Assembly (NCBI GenBank): GCA_001179505.1
Contig: CDMY01000571.1
Location: 248,001-312,000, forward strand
Length of the DNA: 64,000 nt
Direction: 5' to 3'
Source of the DNA: Vitrella brassicaformis CCMP3155
Lineage: Eukaryota; Protista; Chromerida
Program-made: the position numbers and the translations under genes
The notes under the pieces: generated by a model
The model's input: the letters and a program-made list of their open reading frames with translations, nothing else
What the model was told of the DNA's origin: nothing
Database searches by the model: none
Shown: piece by piece, positions 12,593 to 18,666 of the stretch
How positions within the stretch are numbered: position 1 is the first letter of the stretch
Layout: every line of letters begins with the position of its first letter

Positions 12593-14242
12593 TCAGCCGC
12601 CACCCTCCGCCTCAGCCGCGGCACCCTCACCTGCCCAAGGCACAACACACACACACACACACACACGAGTGTGATGCAGGTCACTGCTGCAGGTCGACGT
12701 GGGGTTCTCTATGGTGTGTGTGGCTGTCTGTGTACCTCCGCCGCCCTCTCCGCTGCCGTCATCCAGACCATCACCCTCATCGCCGCTGCCATCGTCCGAA
12801 TCTGCACACACCACACACAGACAGAGAGAGAGAGAGAGAGAGACAGAGAAGGCACATCTTCCTTTCTTCCACCTGTGTGTGTCCGTACCATCGTCGCTGT
12901 CATCATCATGTTGTTGTTGCTGCTGCTGCTGTACTTGTCCGTCGAATACGAATGACGCCACTGCACCCAACGCCACGCGAGCCATCTGAGTGGTCACCGG
13001 ACAACGGTGCTTGAACAAAACACCCTCACACACAGCCGCCTCAGTCGTGTAGACAAACACAATCACTGCGCACAAGGGCAAGAAACACTGATGAGATTCG
13101 ACCAGCAGCAGTCCCTCTCTGTGATTCTGACCGTCGTTGTCTTCTCTATCCTCAATCTCGATCCACGCGACGAATGGGTGGCTGGCGTCGGTCAGCACCA
13201 GCTGTCGCGCACGACCGTCCCAGCTCATTGTGGTTGTCCAGCCGGTCACCAGTGTGTGGGGCGACTCGGTGAAGAGGTCATTCAGACGACCGCCACCGAC
13301 ACCCCTGAAACAACCACACCAACACATGACTTGTGGTGTCCCCTCTCGACCCCATTGGTTCCCTTGGTGTGTTACCGATTGAGTCGAGTCGATGTCTGAT
13401 TTTTCTGGCGATCCATGTGGAAGTGGTCGACGATCTTTTCCTTGGCAAACGACAACACTGACGCATTGGTGAACCCCTGGCCACCGAATGACATCCATCC
13501 GCCGATGATGCCCCAGTACTCGATGCGGCTGCGCACCGGTGGGTCATGTGGCTGTCGATGCTGCTGGTATAGGTGGCCGGCAGGGAGGGGCGGGTCGACC
13601 TCCAGCTCGAAGTCGGGCTCGTCGATGATGGCCCGCACCTCACCGTTGCCGTGTTGGAACAGCTGGAGGCAGCTGCCGTCACTGAAGCGGACGTGGGGGC
13701 CGACCATCTTGAGCTGCGCCAACACACGGGGAGCCGACACATAAGCCTACACACACGACCACACACAGACACACAGAGAGAATGAGGCCCTCTCCTTCCG
13801 TCCCCTCCCCTCCCCGCCCGTCTGTTTGCCGGCTCACCGTTATGTTTGCGTGTGTGTTGATGTCAGCCCCACTGAGGGTCACAGGCAGCTCACAGTTGCC
13901 GCACTGCTCCCCCAGCTCAATCACCTCGCCCACCTCGCCCCAGTCCCCTTCCTCCACCACACACACAGCCGCCAGCAGATCATGTTTGCCGAACTGGTCG
14001 TCGTCGAACCGCAGCAGCTGCACTTGCTGCCCATTCACCGCCCGCCGCAGCAGCCCCGCCTGTGAGCCCAGCGAGTGGCTGAGCCGATCTCTCAGCTGCG
14101 CTTCTCCGAAGAGCTGTTTGAGCCAGGTGCAGGTGGCCTTCAGCCGCACGACGTCCTTGACGCTGAGGAGGTACCGGCTCCTCCGGCCCACACACAGGTA
14201 TGACACGGGGTGCTGCCGCTGCTGCTGCTCGTGGTGCTGCAT
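12593..14242 (-). CDS. Member of an expanded lineage-specific family with a possible degenerate F-box-like N-terminus; subtelomeric copy 1
   Basis: ATG 14242 MQHHEQQQ..YLLSVKDVVRLKATCTWLKQLF; open GC3-rich exons 13837-14242, 13374-13748 and ~12880-13300; acidic low-complexity tail. The 3' end is approximate. Confidence 0.8.
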
Positions 14243-15710
14243 GGGATGGATGGGCCAAGACGGTCAGATGAGTGAGTGAGGCGGTGGTCGACGAGAGGCT
14301 GCACAGGGCGACAGCCGACAGACACACAGAGAGAGAGACAGACAGACAGACAGAAAGGCCAACGCATTCATTGAGGTCAGTGGATGAGCGCATCACTCAG
14401 TCAGCGAGTCAGTGAGTGTTGGGCCTCCCTTACCTCCGATGTCTGTCAGCTCAACGGCCCGCCACCCACCAAAGCAGTCGAGAGGACGACTGACTGACTC
14501 CCTTGGACTGACTAGGGACTCTTCTCGCCCTCTTGTCTTGTCGGCCGAGTGCCTCACTCTCGCGGCGCACAGCTGTCCGACAAGGCGCACAAACAAAACG
14601 CCGCACTTTGGCCTCTCGGGAATGGGGCGATAGGGTAACAAACCCTTTGACCCCTCGTCAAACCGGCTCTTTCGGTTGTTGAGATTTAGCCGTGTCCTCA
14701 TTCCCTTCGTTGCGTGGTCGGCCCAGCCCACACGAACGTGTCAGTCAGGCGGGGCGGCTGCTGGCGGCACTGACAGACACAAACCGGTGTGGCGGTGCCT
14801 CAGCCAGGTCAGTGAGTCAGTGAGTGAGGCCTCGAGCATCGCCAGCCATGATGCTTGTCATCTGTGTGTCTGTGTGTCATCAGCGCTGATGGTGACGACG
14901 ATACGTGCTGAAAGAGGACAGATCGGCCGAAGCGCCGACACCTGAGTGACGCGTCTCTCTCCCTCTCCCCCTCTCTGCCTCGTCGACTGACCAAAGGCAC
15001 CAAGACAAGGCGATACCTCTGACGGCGGGTGTGCCCGTCTGATGGTACGCAGACACCAAAAGGGAAAGGGACATACAGAAAGGCCGATGACGTCTGTTTG
15101 TCTGCGGCGGTGTGTGTGTGTGTCAGCTTTGACCGATGTGCTGATTTTGGGACAAGCGAGACGACGACCGAGCCCTCTATCTCTTTGCCTGCTGAGTGCT
15201 GCTCGTCCGTGTGTGTGTGTGTGTGTGTGTGGATCCATTTGTGTGTGGGAGGCAGGATGATCGGCCGATGAGTCGACGGACCCCCTCTCTCTCTGTCTGT
15301 GTCTGTCTGTCTCTCTGTCGCTGTGTGTGTGAGGTGACGGCTGTCGTGTGTTGGTCGGCCTTATCTCTCTGTGTGTGTGGACTGTGTGGGGTTTTGCGTG
15401 TGGGCCGTCTATCTGCTGCCGTGAGTGTGTGGGCCGGTGAGTGGGGGGAAATCTCACAGACAGACAGACAGACAGAGAAGGGGACGATTGGCTGATTGGC
15501 TGCACAGAGAATCGCTTTGTGGGGCGGTGTTTGGCCTGCCGTCTGGCTGTGAGATGCTCGAGTGGGATGGCTGTTGGCGAGAGCGTGTTGATCTCTCGTC
15601 GGTGCATCCGTCACACACGGGCGGCTCACAGACAGACAGACAGACAGGCCGACAGGCCGACACACACACCGATCCGTCCGTTCGCCTGGATTGGAAGGAG
15701 AGAGAGAGAG

Positions 15711-15761
15711 ATTGTCTTCCCCTCTCTGTGCATCTGGCTTGCACAGAGAGGGGAAGACAAT
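15711..15761. repeat. Perfect 22-bp inverted repeat with 7-nt loop
   Basis: ATTGTCTTCCCCTCTCTGTGCA (15711-15732) is the exact reverse complement of 15740-15761. Confidence 0.95.
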
Positions 15762-15793
15762 GCACACCACCTCTGTGGTGAGTGGTTTCCCTC

Positions 15794-17127
15794 TCCCTTT
15801 GTGGGCATCTTGCACACCAACCGGCAACCTGAGAGCATCAGCCCATGTGTGGTGTTGGTGCTTTGGCGTTGCCGGGTGGTGACAGAGATGCACACAGAGG
15901 GAAATGGACAGACACGCGACAGTGTGATGATTCGATGTCGACACACACTGACGCACATGCCCGTATGGATCTTACGGATGGGTGCCTGCCTCTCTCTGGT
16001 GGTGTGAGTGTGTGTGGGTGCCCGACGCATGACATAGTAAGGTGGTGGGTGCGCTTTTGCCATCCCACCCACATGACCCACCGCTGACACCCACGGAGTG
16101 GATGCCCCTCTCTCTCTCTGCCGACGGGTGAGTGGGGGGCCTGGCGTATTGTCGAATGAACTGAGGCTTTATGTGTGTGCATCACATAATGGTGTTATGT
16201 CTGTGTGTGTGTGTGTGGGAAGGAGAGAGAGAGAGAGAGGCGTTTGTTTGCTTCCCTTTGATGCGCATCGTGTGCTGGTGCGCTGATTGTGAGCTGCTTC
16301 ATGGACACGTCACACATTGAGTGTAGGTCCCCACTCTCTGTGTGCGGTAGCCATCGAGCGACTGACAGACAGACACTGTCCACACACGCACGTTCCATGC
16401 ACACAAAGGAGGTAAAGACAGCCGACTGCTGCCGGTGGGTCATATGACGTGGATGAATGGATTTCCCTCCGTCTGTCTGTCTATCTATCGGTCTGTCTGT
16501 CTGGTGTGATGTGTTGTGTGTGACACTCGCCATGTTCTTCGATCTGCTGATGCGCAATGGGCGCTGTTGGCTGTCAACGTGTGTGAGGGAGAGAGAGAGA
16601 GATTTTTCTGTTTTCGCTAGCTGTGATCTGTATGGCATTAGTGTGGCTTTGCTGCCTTCGTGTCCCTCTCTGTCCTTTTGTGGACATGTCACAGCGGTCG
16701 GCAATCTCAGAGTGGCAGCGTGTGGCTGTGTCTGTCGCTCTTTGACTTCCGGGCGGCTGCCGAGATGCACACAAAAGGGAGAGGGGGGCTGTCTGATGGA
16801 CACACTGACACAGACATACACTGATGTGATGTGTGGATGTGCCTCTTTGCCACTCTCCGCTGACGGCCATGTGTATGTTGCCGTCACGGCTCTCACCTGC
16901 TGGCCCGTCTGTCTCTATGTGTGTGGGTGGGTGGGCAGGAGAGAAAGAGGCTGTTTTGTTTCTGTCTGTTATCGTGTCTTCAGTTTTCCTACCTGCCTTC
17001 CTGTCCATCTCCCTTTGTGGGCATCTCTGTCACCGCCCGGCAACGCCAGCGCATCAGCCCATGTGTGGTGTCGGTGCTTTGGGGTTGCCGGGCGGTGACA
17101 GAGATGCACACAAAGAGAAGAATGGAC
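15794..17127. repeat. Three paralogous ~110-125 bp fold-back elements (A 15794-15902, B 16664-16785, C 17003-17127)
   Basis: Shared right arm CCGGG(C/T)GG..GAGATGCACACA(A/G)A..G. In copy C, 17021-17044 is the exact reverse complement of 17084-17107; A and B retain outer stems. Confidence 0.85.
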
Positions 17128-17405
17128 CCACACACACGACTGATCACCCATCCCACCAAATATGGCAGTGGATGTGTCCTCTTGCCGTCCGTCTATGCAG
17201 CCACACACGCACATGGATGGATGGATGTGTGCTTTGCCTTTTCTACATGAATCGACGCTGGATATGTCTGTGCGATACGTATAGTGGAAAGAAGAGAGGT
17301 ATAAGATGAGCGCATTAGCTCTCATGTTTTACAGAGGAGAGAGTGAGGGAGAGGTCTGTTCGCTTCCTTGTGGTGTCAACGTATTGGCGTGCTGACACCA
17401 GTGCT

Positions 17406-17482
17406 TCTTGGTGACCGAACACATTAAGTGTTGATCATCGCTGCATCTTGGTGACCGAACACATTAAGTGTTGATCATCGCT
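17406..17482. repeat. Direct tandem duplication, 37 bp identical, period 40
   Basis: TCTTGGTGACCGAACACATTAAGTGTTGATCATCGCT at 17406-17442 and 17446-17482. Confidence 0.95.
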
Positions 17483-17795
17483 CTCTGTGTGCGATGGCCG
17501 TGGAGCGGCTGACAGACAAGACACAACCCAGAAGCGGATGGATGGACAGAAGACAGCTGTGTTGACGAGACGGAACAAATACACTGTGACTCGCACACAT
17601 TAATGCATCCGTCATTGTACCTGCGTGTGCATCACATGATGCAGTCACGCTAACCCACACACCACATGCCGTATTACGCACACATACATCGCTCAGGCCG
17701 CCACAGTGGGAGTGAGCCGCTGCCACACATCCTCACACACATGCCGCACCTCAACCACCTAATTGAATATCACACACACACATAACATCCAGCTC

Positions 17796-18088
17796 TTTAG
17801 GGTTTAGGTTTTAGGGTCTAGGGTTTAGGGCTTAGGGTTTAGGGCTTAGGTTTAGGGTCTTAGGGTTTAGGGTTTAGGGTTTAGGGTTTAGGGTTTAGGG
17901 TTTAGGGTTTAGGGTTTAGGGTTTAGGGTTTAGGGTTTAGGGTTTAGGGTTTAGGGTTTAGGGTTTAGGGTTTAGGGTTTAGGGTTTAGGGTTTAGGGTT
18001 TAGGGTTTAGGGTTTAGGGTTTAGGGTTTAGGGTTTAGGGTTTAGGGTTTAGGGTTTAGGGTTTAGGGTTTAGGGTTTAGGGTTTAGG
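17796..18088 (+). repeat. Telomeric repeat array (TTTAGGG)n, about 42 units, with degenerate proximal units
   Basis: Direct reading. Variants TCTAGGG, CTTAGGG and TTTAGG occur in the first ~70 bp, then perfect units run up to the N gap. Confidence 0.98.
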
Positions 18089-18388
18089 NNNNNNNNNNNN
18101 NNNNNNNNNNNNNNNNNNNNNNNNNNNNNNNNNNNNNNNNNNNNNNNNNNNNNNNNNNNNNNNNNNNNNNNNNNNNNNNNNNNNNNNNNNNNNNNNNNNN
18201 NNNNNNNNNNNNNNNNNNNNNNNNNNNNNNNNNNNNNNNNNNNNNNNNNNNNNNNNNNNNNNNNNNNNNNNNNNNNNNNNNNNNNNNNNNNNNNNNNNNN
18301 NNNNNNNNNNNNNNNNNNNNNNNNNNNNNNNNNNNNNNNNNNNNNNNNNNNNNNNNNNNNNNNNNNNNNNNNNNNNNNNNNNNNNNNN
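18089..18388. other. Assembly gap (300 N)
   Basis: Run of N. Confidence 1.
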
Positions 18389-18666
18389 ACCACACACACA
18401 GCCGCCAGCAGATCATGTTTGCCGAACTGGTCGTCGTCGAACCGCAGCAGCTGCACTTGCTGCCCATTCACCGCCCGCCGCAGCCCCGCCTGTGAGCCCA
18501 GCGAGTGGCTGAGCCGATCTCTCAGCTGGGCCGCTCCGAAGAGGTCTTCGAGCCACGTGCAGGTGGCTCTCAGCCGCACGACGTCCTTGACGCTGAGGAG
18601 GTAGCGGCTCCTCCGGCCCACACACAGGTATGACACGGGGTGCTGCTGCTGCTCGTGGTGCTGCAT
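18389..18666 (-). CDS. 5' part of a close paralog of the 12593-14242 gene (copy 2), truncated by the gap
   Basis: MQHHEQQQHPVSYLCVGRRSRYLLSVKDVVRLRATC..; 18389-18700 aligns almost base-for-base with 13956-14280. Confidence 0.85.

Follow-up and report, generated by a model that had tools for sequence, protein, structure and literature searches.

Hairpins beside a telomere of Vitrella brassicaformis: probable modules of a composite non-coding repeat with one-armed conservation

Chromerids are free-living relatives of apicomplexan parasites, and we know of no publication on their chromosome ends or repeat families. Here we ask what the long hairpins are that lie next to a telomere-like tract in Vitrella brassicaformis CCMP3155, and whether they should be regarded as small-RNA genes, as mobile elements or as parts of something larger. 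The genome paper of this organism makes no mention of telomeres or Argonaute (PMC4501334). The hairpins are located in a window of 64,000 nt (contig CDMY01000571.1, positions 248,001 to 312,000, forward strand), and the coordinates below are those of the window unless a contig or locus is named. The original prediction, made from the letters of this window, described three paralogous hairpins (A, B and C) as a subtelomeric cluster with retained pairing, and proposed that they are either precursors of small RNAs or a family of decayed fold-back elements.

All three hairpins are real and lie on the + strand. Copy A (15788-15911) and copy C (17003-17127) belong to the main type, hereafter H2, and copy B (16662-16789) is a member of a smaller subfamily with an invariant right arm of its own. 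The perfect 24-bp stem predicted for C is formed by 17021-17044 with 17084-17107 and its outer pairing by 17003-17008 with 17122-17127; when mismatches are allowed, the stem grows to a 44-nt arm pair. As had been described, A shares the loop and the right arm with C (86 % identity across 116 nt) and has a drifted left arm. Its right-arm 24-mer fits the degenerate family pattern with 0 mismatches (C571:263868-263891). The fold of B, diverged as it is, contains the pairs claimed for it. Folded as + strand RNA, the three copies reach -77.3 kcal/mol (A, z -7.6), -68.6 kcal/mol (B, z -4.9) and -93.5 kcal/mol (C, z -10.3), and none of the 200 shuffles used for comparison was equally stable.

Two further structures of the same region were missing from the predicted list. 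The first is hp1 (15531-15652, + strand), a long quasi-palindrome of 122 nt which belongs to the repeat unit of A and folds to -66.5 kcal/mol on the + strand (z -5.5) and to -53.4 kcal/mol on the - strand (z -3.6). The other is a mini-palindrome at 15711-15761, a perfect 22-bp inverted repeat with 100 % complementary arms and a 7-nt loop (-42.9 kcal/mol, z -8.0). It is unique to the unit of the window, as the corresponding alignment column is empty in 29 other units, and it looks like a recent product of template switching or internal deletion. The arms of the mini-palindrome are similar to the lower stem of the main hairpin. Mechanical ORFs of up to 259 aa are present between 14.8 and 17.8 kb. 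Ten ORFs of this region were looked up exactly in a collection of 15 billion proteins and none was present, and a homology search of the protein collection with the ORF running through hairpin C recovered no relatives, in agreement with the prediction that the region holds no convincing ORF.

The hairpins are not private to this locus but belong to a family. We searched the V. brassicaformis assembly of 72,700,666 bases in 1064 pieces, which was produced from short reads using velvet/SSPACE (PMC4501334). The 24-base core of the right arm has 75 matches genome-wide with up to 2 mismatches, 43 of them exact, and a 35-base core has 70 matches with up to 3 mismatches; reversed-pattern controls for these cores resulted in 0 matches. 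The DNA search with copy C scored 40 places, and a covariance model based on 49 copies recovered around 100 places on around 45 contigs, with scores of approximately 130-150 bits on the + strand and 50-70 bits on the - strand, the + strand being always far higher. The hairpin-bearing repeat unit is present about 75-100 times in V. brassicaformis. The B subfamily, with its own invariant right arm, has 12 copies genome-wide. A single one of the 75 matches is a left-arm mirror of the right-arm 24-mer, namely that of copy C (17021-17044), and its perfect 24-bp stem is the exception and the sole such case in the genome. Metagenome scans with the invariant arms of H2 and of hp1 returned 0 matches each. 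Two sites of the invariant right arm, separated by 14 nt, are polymorphic, and the exact-match copies include all four combinations of their variants, which points to recurrent CpG transitions or to very short conversion tracts between copies.

To place the hairpins in their context, blocks of the window were compared by BLAST with 120 kb of arrays, and approximately 50 loci were annotated for the same motifs. The hairpins turned out to be parts of a unit of about 1.15 kb, which consists of a short telomere-like palindrome followed by the hairpins hp0, hp1 and H2, a D1 or D2 block, sometimes an extra H2 or B-type hairpin, and one or two b2 blocks. Both the module order hp0-hp1-H2-D-b2 and the orientation are constant in the roughly 50 annotated loci. 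Head-to-tail arrays of the unit were found on contigs C315, C217, C523, C347, C437 and C72, where the units alternate with TLDc-domain genes of the opposite strand whose exons lie between the units. The TLDc domain was the only Pfam match among ORFs neighbouring the array units. The TLDc family has at least 71 exon-level matches on many contigs, most of them outside the arrays. Between contigs, array units share about 95 % identity along their entire 1.15 kb, compared to 70-84 % for the adjacent gene segments. Short telomere-like palindromes open every array unit (e.g. L031:9018), and copies of the TLDc gene (e.g. L031:7282-7836, - strand) from the arrays on C315, C217 and C523 are 70-84 % mutually identical.

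On either side of 55 copies we found only the conserved modules next in the unit or microsatellite; direct repeats bordering a copy, such as target-site duplications (TSDs), were absent, and no copy among the loci examined stood alone in unrelated sequence. Since the original prediction had defined a MITE by dispersed copies with TSDs, these two results rule out a MITE in that sense. The more general idea of a decayed fold-back family came close, as the family numbers at least 75 copies and the variable segment of the left arm has a consensus still nearly complementary to the right arm, but the hairpins are not free-standing elements.

The window contains the final one and a half units of one chromosome end, with the modules in the order hp1, mini-palindrome, A, D2, b2, B, C, D1, b2 and telomere. 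Alignment with array units revealed a diverged version of the upstream part of the unit at 14323..15530 (+ strand), including a remnant of the telomere-like palindrome (around 14631-14646, +) and, in decayed form, the first hairpin, hp0 (around 15398-15465, +), the folding of which no longer beats shuffles (z 0.3). Of the two alternative post-hairpin blocks, D2 (15916..15941, +) is common to other copies and D1 (17137..17174, +) to many array copies. In arrays the hairpin is followed by the conserved block b2 (16269..16375, +), and b2 is also the final conserved module ahead of telomeres. A second b2 (17380..17520, +), which is the last before the telomere, contains a local 40-nt tandem duplication (17402-17482, 97 % match). 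The telomere postulated nearby is represented by a (TTTAGGG)n tract at 17796-18088 (+), with about 42 units and variant units at its inner edge.

This telomere tract is internal to the scaffold, not at its end, and is directly followed by a scaffold gap of 300 N (18090-18389). The segment 18390-18756 repeats 13957-14322 with about 95 % identity and then diverges, and the homology to array units begins at the same point of divergence, at 14323. A telomere-ended contig was scaffolded beside a second copy, paralogous or allelic, of one and the same gene start. Either the scaffolding is a mis-join, or the two copies represent a structural variant and one of them is a chromosome end.

On six contigs (C571, C310, C374, C542, C802 and C104), hairpins and telomere tract are separated by about 0.6-1.4 kb. 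The orientation of the hairpins to the telomere is the same at all six ends, where their + strand is the G-rich one and leads into the telomere, and at several ends the units occupy the last 1-3.5 kb before it. In three aligned ends, H2, a D block and b2 are succeeded by 100-400 bases that the ends do not share and finally by the telomere, so b2 is the last block common to them. The predicted subtelomeric position is borne out by these six ends, but in this fragmented short-read assembly it is established only partly, because a near-telomere match was found on only 4 of the first 13 telomere-bearing contigs listed and the large arrays on C217, C315, C523 and C347 are on contigs without telomere tracts. 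At about 22.9 kb of C658 (L027:1446-1530), a head-to-head telomere-like palindrome takes the place of the hairpin left arm and abuts the hairpin loop and right arm. It could be the scar of a hairpin breakage followed by telomere addition and fusion.

We tested the pairing on an alignment of 49 H2 copies using a three-helix model (14, 7 and 10 pairs). In this model 92.3 % of cells pair, compared to 38-53 % when the partners are slid. However, only 16 cells were changed on both sides, versus 4-17 in the slid controls, and the helices are almost invariant. At the family level the H2 pairing is inherited and not compensatory, contrary to the view that compensatory changes had retained it: the right arm does not vary and the changes in the variable stretches of the left arm are uncompensated. 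The two-arm difference between A/C and B, which had been read as such a change, is a difference between subfamilies, and only about half of the six examined B copies retain it.

The variation is concentrated on one arm. The left arm of H2 carries an island of 11 nt (11 nt long in 47 of 54 copies) and another of 3 nt, in which column identity is 0.3-0.7, while the facing bases of the right arm show 0.9-1.0. The consensus of the island is still almost the complement of the right arm, yet on average only 6.96 of the 11 island positions are able to pair (null 6.09 +/- 0.14). As the 5'-arm islands are hypervariable, they form internal loops in most copies. The apical segment of about 22 bp contains only a 3x3 mismatch, most copies have an 11x11 internal loop in the lower half, and the longest uninterrupted helix has a median of 11 bp among copies. 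The situation in hp1 is similar: in 47 aligned copies, column identity reaches about 0.9-1.0 on the right arm, and variable islands of 10-11 nt and 2-3 nt interrupt the left arm. In hp0, hp1 and H2, all hypervariable stretches are on the 5' arm and face an invariant 3' arm. Near hp0 and the telomere-like palindrome, island length is variable, as at ordinary hot spots.

The H2 islands form sub-themes, which suggests gradual divergence and not random replacement. A search for a complementary partner of the island within 1 kb on either side gave 9.67 of 11 positions in the own unit versus 9.8 in other units. An 11-mer is expected to occur about 35 times by chance in the 72.7-Mb genome and is too short for a target search. 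Several readings of the islands were considered and rejected. Variation resembling that of diversity-generating systems (DGR-like) would be confined to positions opposite adenines, and the islands change at all positions; RIP or deamination would leave only transitions, and transversions are included; coding sequence does not fit either, as the length differences are non-multiples of three. Neither uniform decay nor homogenisation of the whole unit nor selection for a Dicer substrate accounts for variation limited to the 5' arm.

The two strands differ in their folding. The + strand folds better in 53 of 53 copies (-79.0 versus -59.6 kcal/mol) and, when composition is controlled for, in 47 of 53 (z -6.98 versus -4.81). 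The upper helix includes four conserved G-T wobble pairs, which are mismatches on the opposite strand. The strand-biased fold together with the wobble pairs favours a structure of the single strand over an ordinary DNA palindrome. At permissive thresholds, an Rfam search of 13-18.1 kb recovered only sub-threshold microRNA-like matches (the best being mir-253, with 33.2 bits versus a gathering threshold of 72), and at gathering thresholds no match was obtained in 111 kb of arrays. A CUGAUGA-like motif in hp0 was considered as a hammerhead and discarded, having no Rfam ribozyme match. The genome does encode domains of the RNAi type: exon-level Pfam searches found, above the cut-off, the Piwi domain at 4 loci, the RNase III domain at 4 loci and 15 RdRP matches on 4 contigs.

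We consider it somewhat probable that the hairpins belong, as modules, to a composite non-coding repeat specific to Vitrella and are not free-standing genes or transposons. On balance, we also lean towards viewing the locus as one and a half units, the last before the telomere, of a repeat that is lineage-specific and both telomere-associated and arrayed. The family would have spread, and been kept uniform, by recombination between ends and arrays and not by transposition, the possible routes being unequal exchange, break-induced copying and conversion. Each hairpin would originally have been a near-perfect palindrome, and the present pairing would be a remnant of that ancestry. Occasional copying from arm to arm, by template switching within the quasi-palindrome, may restore perfect stems, and recent corrections of this kind could have given rise to copy C and the 22-bp mini-palindrome, which both lie in the unit closest to the telomere. 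The function, if there is any, is most likely exerted in cis, through protein binding or through folding of the G-rich single strand at replication or after end resection, and production of small RNAs by a Dicer-type enzyme seems less probable than that. Some observations, the strand-biased fold among them, do not sit easily with the composite repeat. Homogenisation of the whole unit should erase the islands, yet they persist. Moreover, conservation of the unit exceeds that of the coding exons beside it. A passive repeat would need very active homogenisation to reach this level, so there may be a function at the sequence level, possibly as RNA.

Among the alternatives, the hairpins could be a cluster of small-RNA precursors, in which the G-rich strand would be transcribed towards the telomere (in the sense of TERRA) and would fold into a chain of hairpins, from which a Dicer-like enzyme would release small RNAs. 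These would derive mainly from the conserved 3' arms and would guide the silencing of chromosome ends and arrays. Hairpins do stand in rows on the same strand, hp1, A, B and C in the window and hp0-hp1-H2 in the arrays, and the better + strand fold in all 53 copies, the conserved wobble pairs of the upper helix and the presence of Piwi, RNase III and RdRP domains above the Pfam cut-offs count in favour of this reading. The segment of about 22 bp above the large internal loop has only the 3x3 mismatch, which a Dicer-type duplex would tolerate, and the conservation of the 3' arm resembles that of guide over passenger strands. However, 74 of 75 copies lack a left-arm mirror of the 24 bases of the lower and middle stem, and the longest uninterrupted helix has a median length of 11 bp. 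Conservation extends over the whole 60-nt right arm and the 1.15-kb unit, far beyond the need of one small RNA, covariation does not exceed the slid controls, and the microRNA scores in Rfam are far below gathering (33 versus 72 bits). Overall, we regard small-RNA precursors as unlikely. The units could instead be multi-copy genes of a structured non-coding RNA of about 0.5-1.1 kb each, whose scaffold would be kept by purifying selection and whose 5'-arm islands would be unconstrained loop strands or copy-specific recognition segments. This would fit a non-coding unit that exceeds the neighbouring exons in conservation, the strand-specific fold, and the discrete islands that two hairpins of similar geometry carry between invariant helices and whose length hardly changes (11 nt in 47 of 54 copies). 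Against it, no Rfam family was matched, the islands have no nearby complementary partner (9.67 of 11 in the own unit, 9.8 in other units), some of them, near hp0 and the telomere-like palindrome, differ in length as ordinary hot spots do, and the metagenome scans contained nothing similar; such genes appear highly improbable to us.

A related proposal leaves the nature of the strand broader. The units would be either multi-copy, strand-specific structured RNA genes or a structured single-stranded element of the G-rich strand, in which a scaffold of three helices displays segments of 11 nt and 3 nt. It is very doubtful, but if it were true, the displayed copy-specific segments would sit on the 5' side of two internal loops, and the units would be a eukaryotic family with a constant scaffold and variable segments at chromosome ends, without a described counterpart. 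Transposition was weighed as well, with the hairpin or the 1.15-kb unit as a non-autonomous element (fold-back, MITE or Helitron-type) and the arrays as a by-product. The about 75-100 copies over around 45 contigs, the younger appearance of the unit (about 95 % identity) relative to its surroundings (70-84 %) and a large hairpin at the 3' end of the unit count in favour of this. Nevertheless, the hairpin is never alone in unrelated sequence but has the same module flanks at every locus examined, the unit is not bounded by TSDs or terminal inverted repeats, and the orientation relative to the telomere is constant at six of six ends. Apart from the TLDc genes, no coding partner was found in approximately 250 kb of array sequence, and no Rep-helicase ORF was noticed on inspection of these arrays. 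Mobility of this kind is hardly to be expected here.

The composite repeat can be compared to several known systems. Telomere-associated repeats include the TARE blocks of Plasmodium, the X and Y' elements of yeast and the human subtelomeric repeat blocks. Like these, the Vitrella unit is non-coding, common to several non-homologous ends, fixed in order and in orientation relative to the telomere, similar between ends, equipped with internal telomere-like motifs and adjacent to expanded gene families. Unlike them, it is a chain of long quasi-palindromes with one invariant arm, it is also arrayed on contigs without telomeres, and its sequence is not known to be related to any described element. 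Some satellite DNAs have dyad symmetry and alternating conserved and variable segments. The Vitrella units resemble these in their head-to-tail arrangement, in conserved boxes split by variable stretches and in their potential for non-B DNA, but differ in being modular, irregularly spaced and interleaved with protein-coding genes, and in that the variable stretches are confined to one arm per palindrome. With fold-back elements and MITEs, the hairpins have in common that they are short, non-coding, multi-copy inverted repeats with decayed arms, although they lack TSDs, are always inside the same larger unit in the same orientation, and have arms that decay very unequally. The likeness to microRNA-like clusters lies in several hairpins of 110-130 nt on one strand, in the better conserved 3' arm and in the nearly paired apical segment of 22 bp. 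It ends with the about 75-100 near-identical copies, mostly with 11-nt internal loops, with conservation far wider than a small-RNA duplex, with the missing covariation and with scores below the Rfam thresholds.

To our knowledge, no repeat unit next to the telomeres of Vitrella had been described before, and the invariant 24-base arm of this one provides a simple marker for locating chromosome ends. The tempting designation of the locus as a microRNA cluster is removed as unsupported. Such sharp conservation of a single arm, odd in a unit that is uniform elsewhere, could reflect palindrome dynamics that depend on the direction of replication at chromosome ends, or an unrecognised RNA. Next to the repeat, at 13679-14242 (- strand), we noticed an apparent protein-coding start with an ATG near 14242, about 80 nt from the start of the repeat unit; the ORF has no Pfam match. 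As array units also begin just upstream of the 5' end of an opposite-strand gene, the unit may carry or adjoin promoters.
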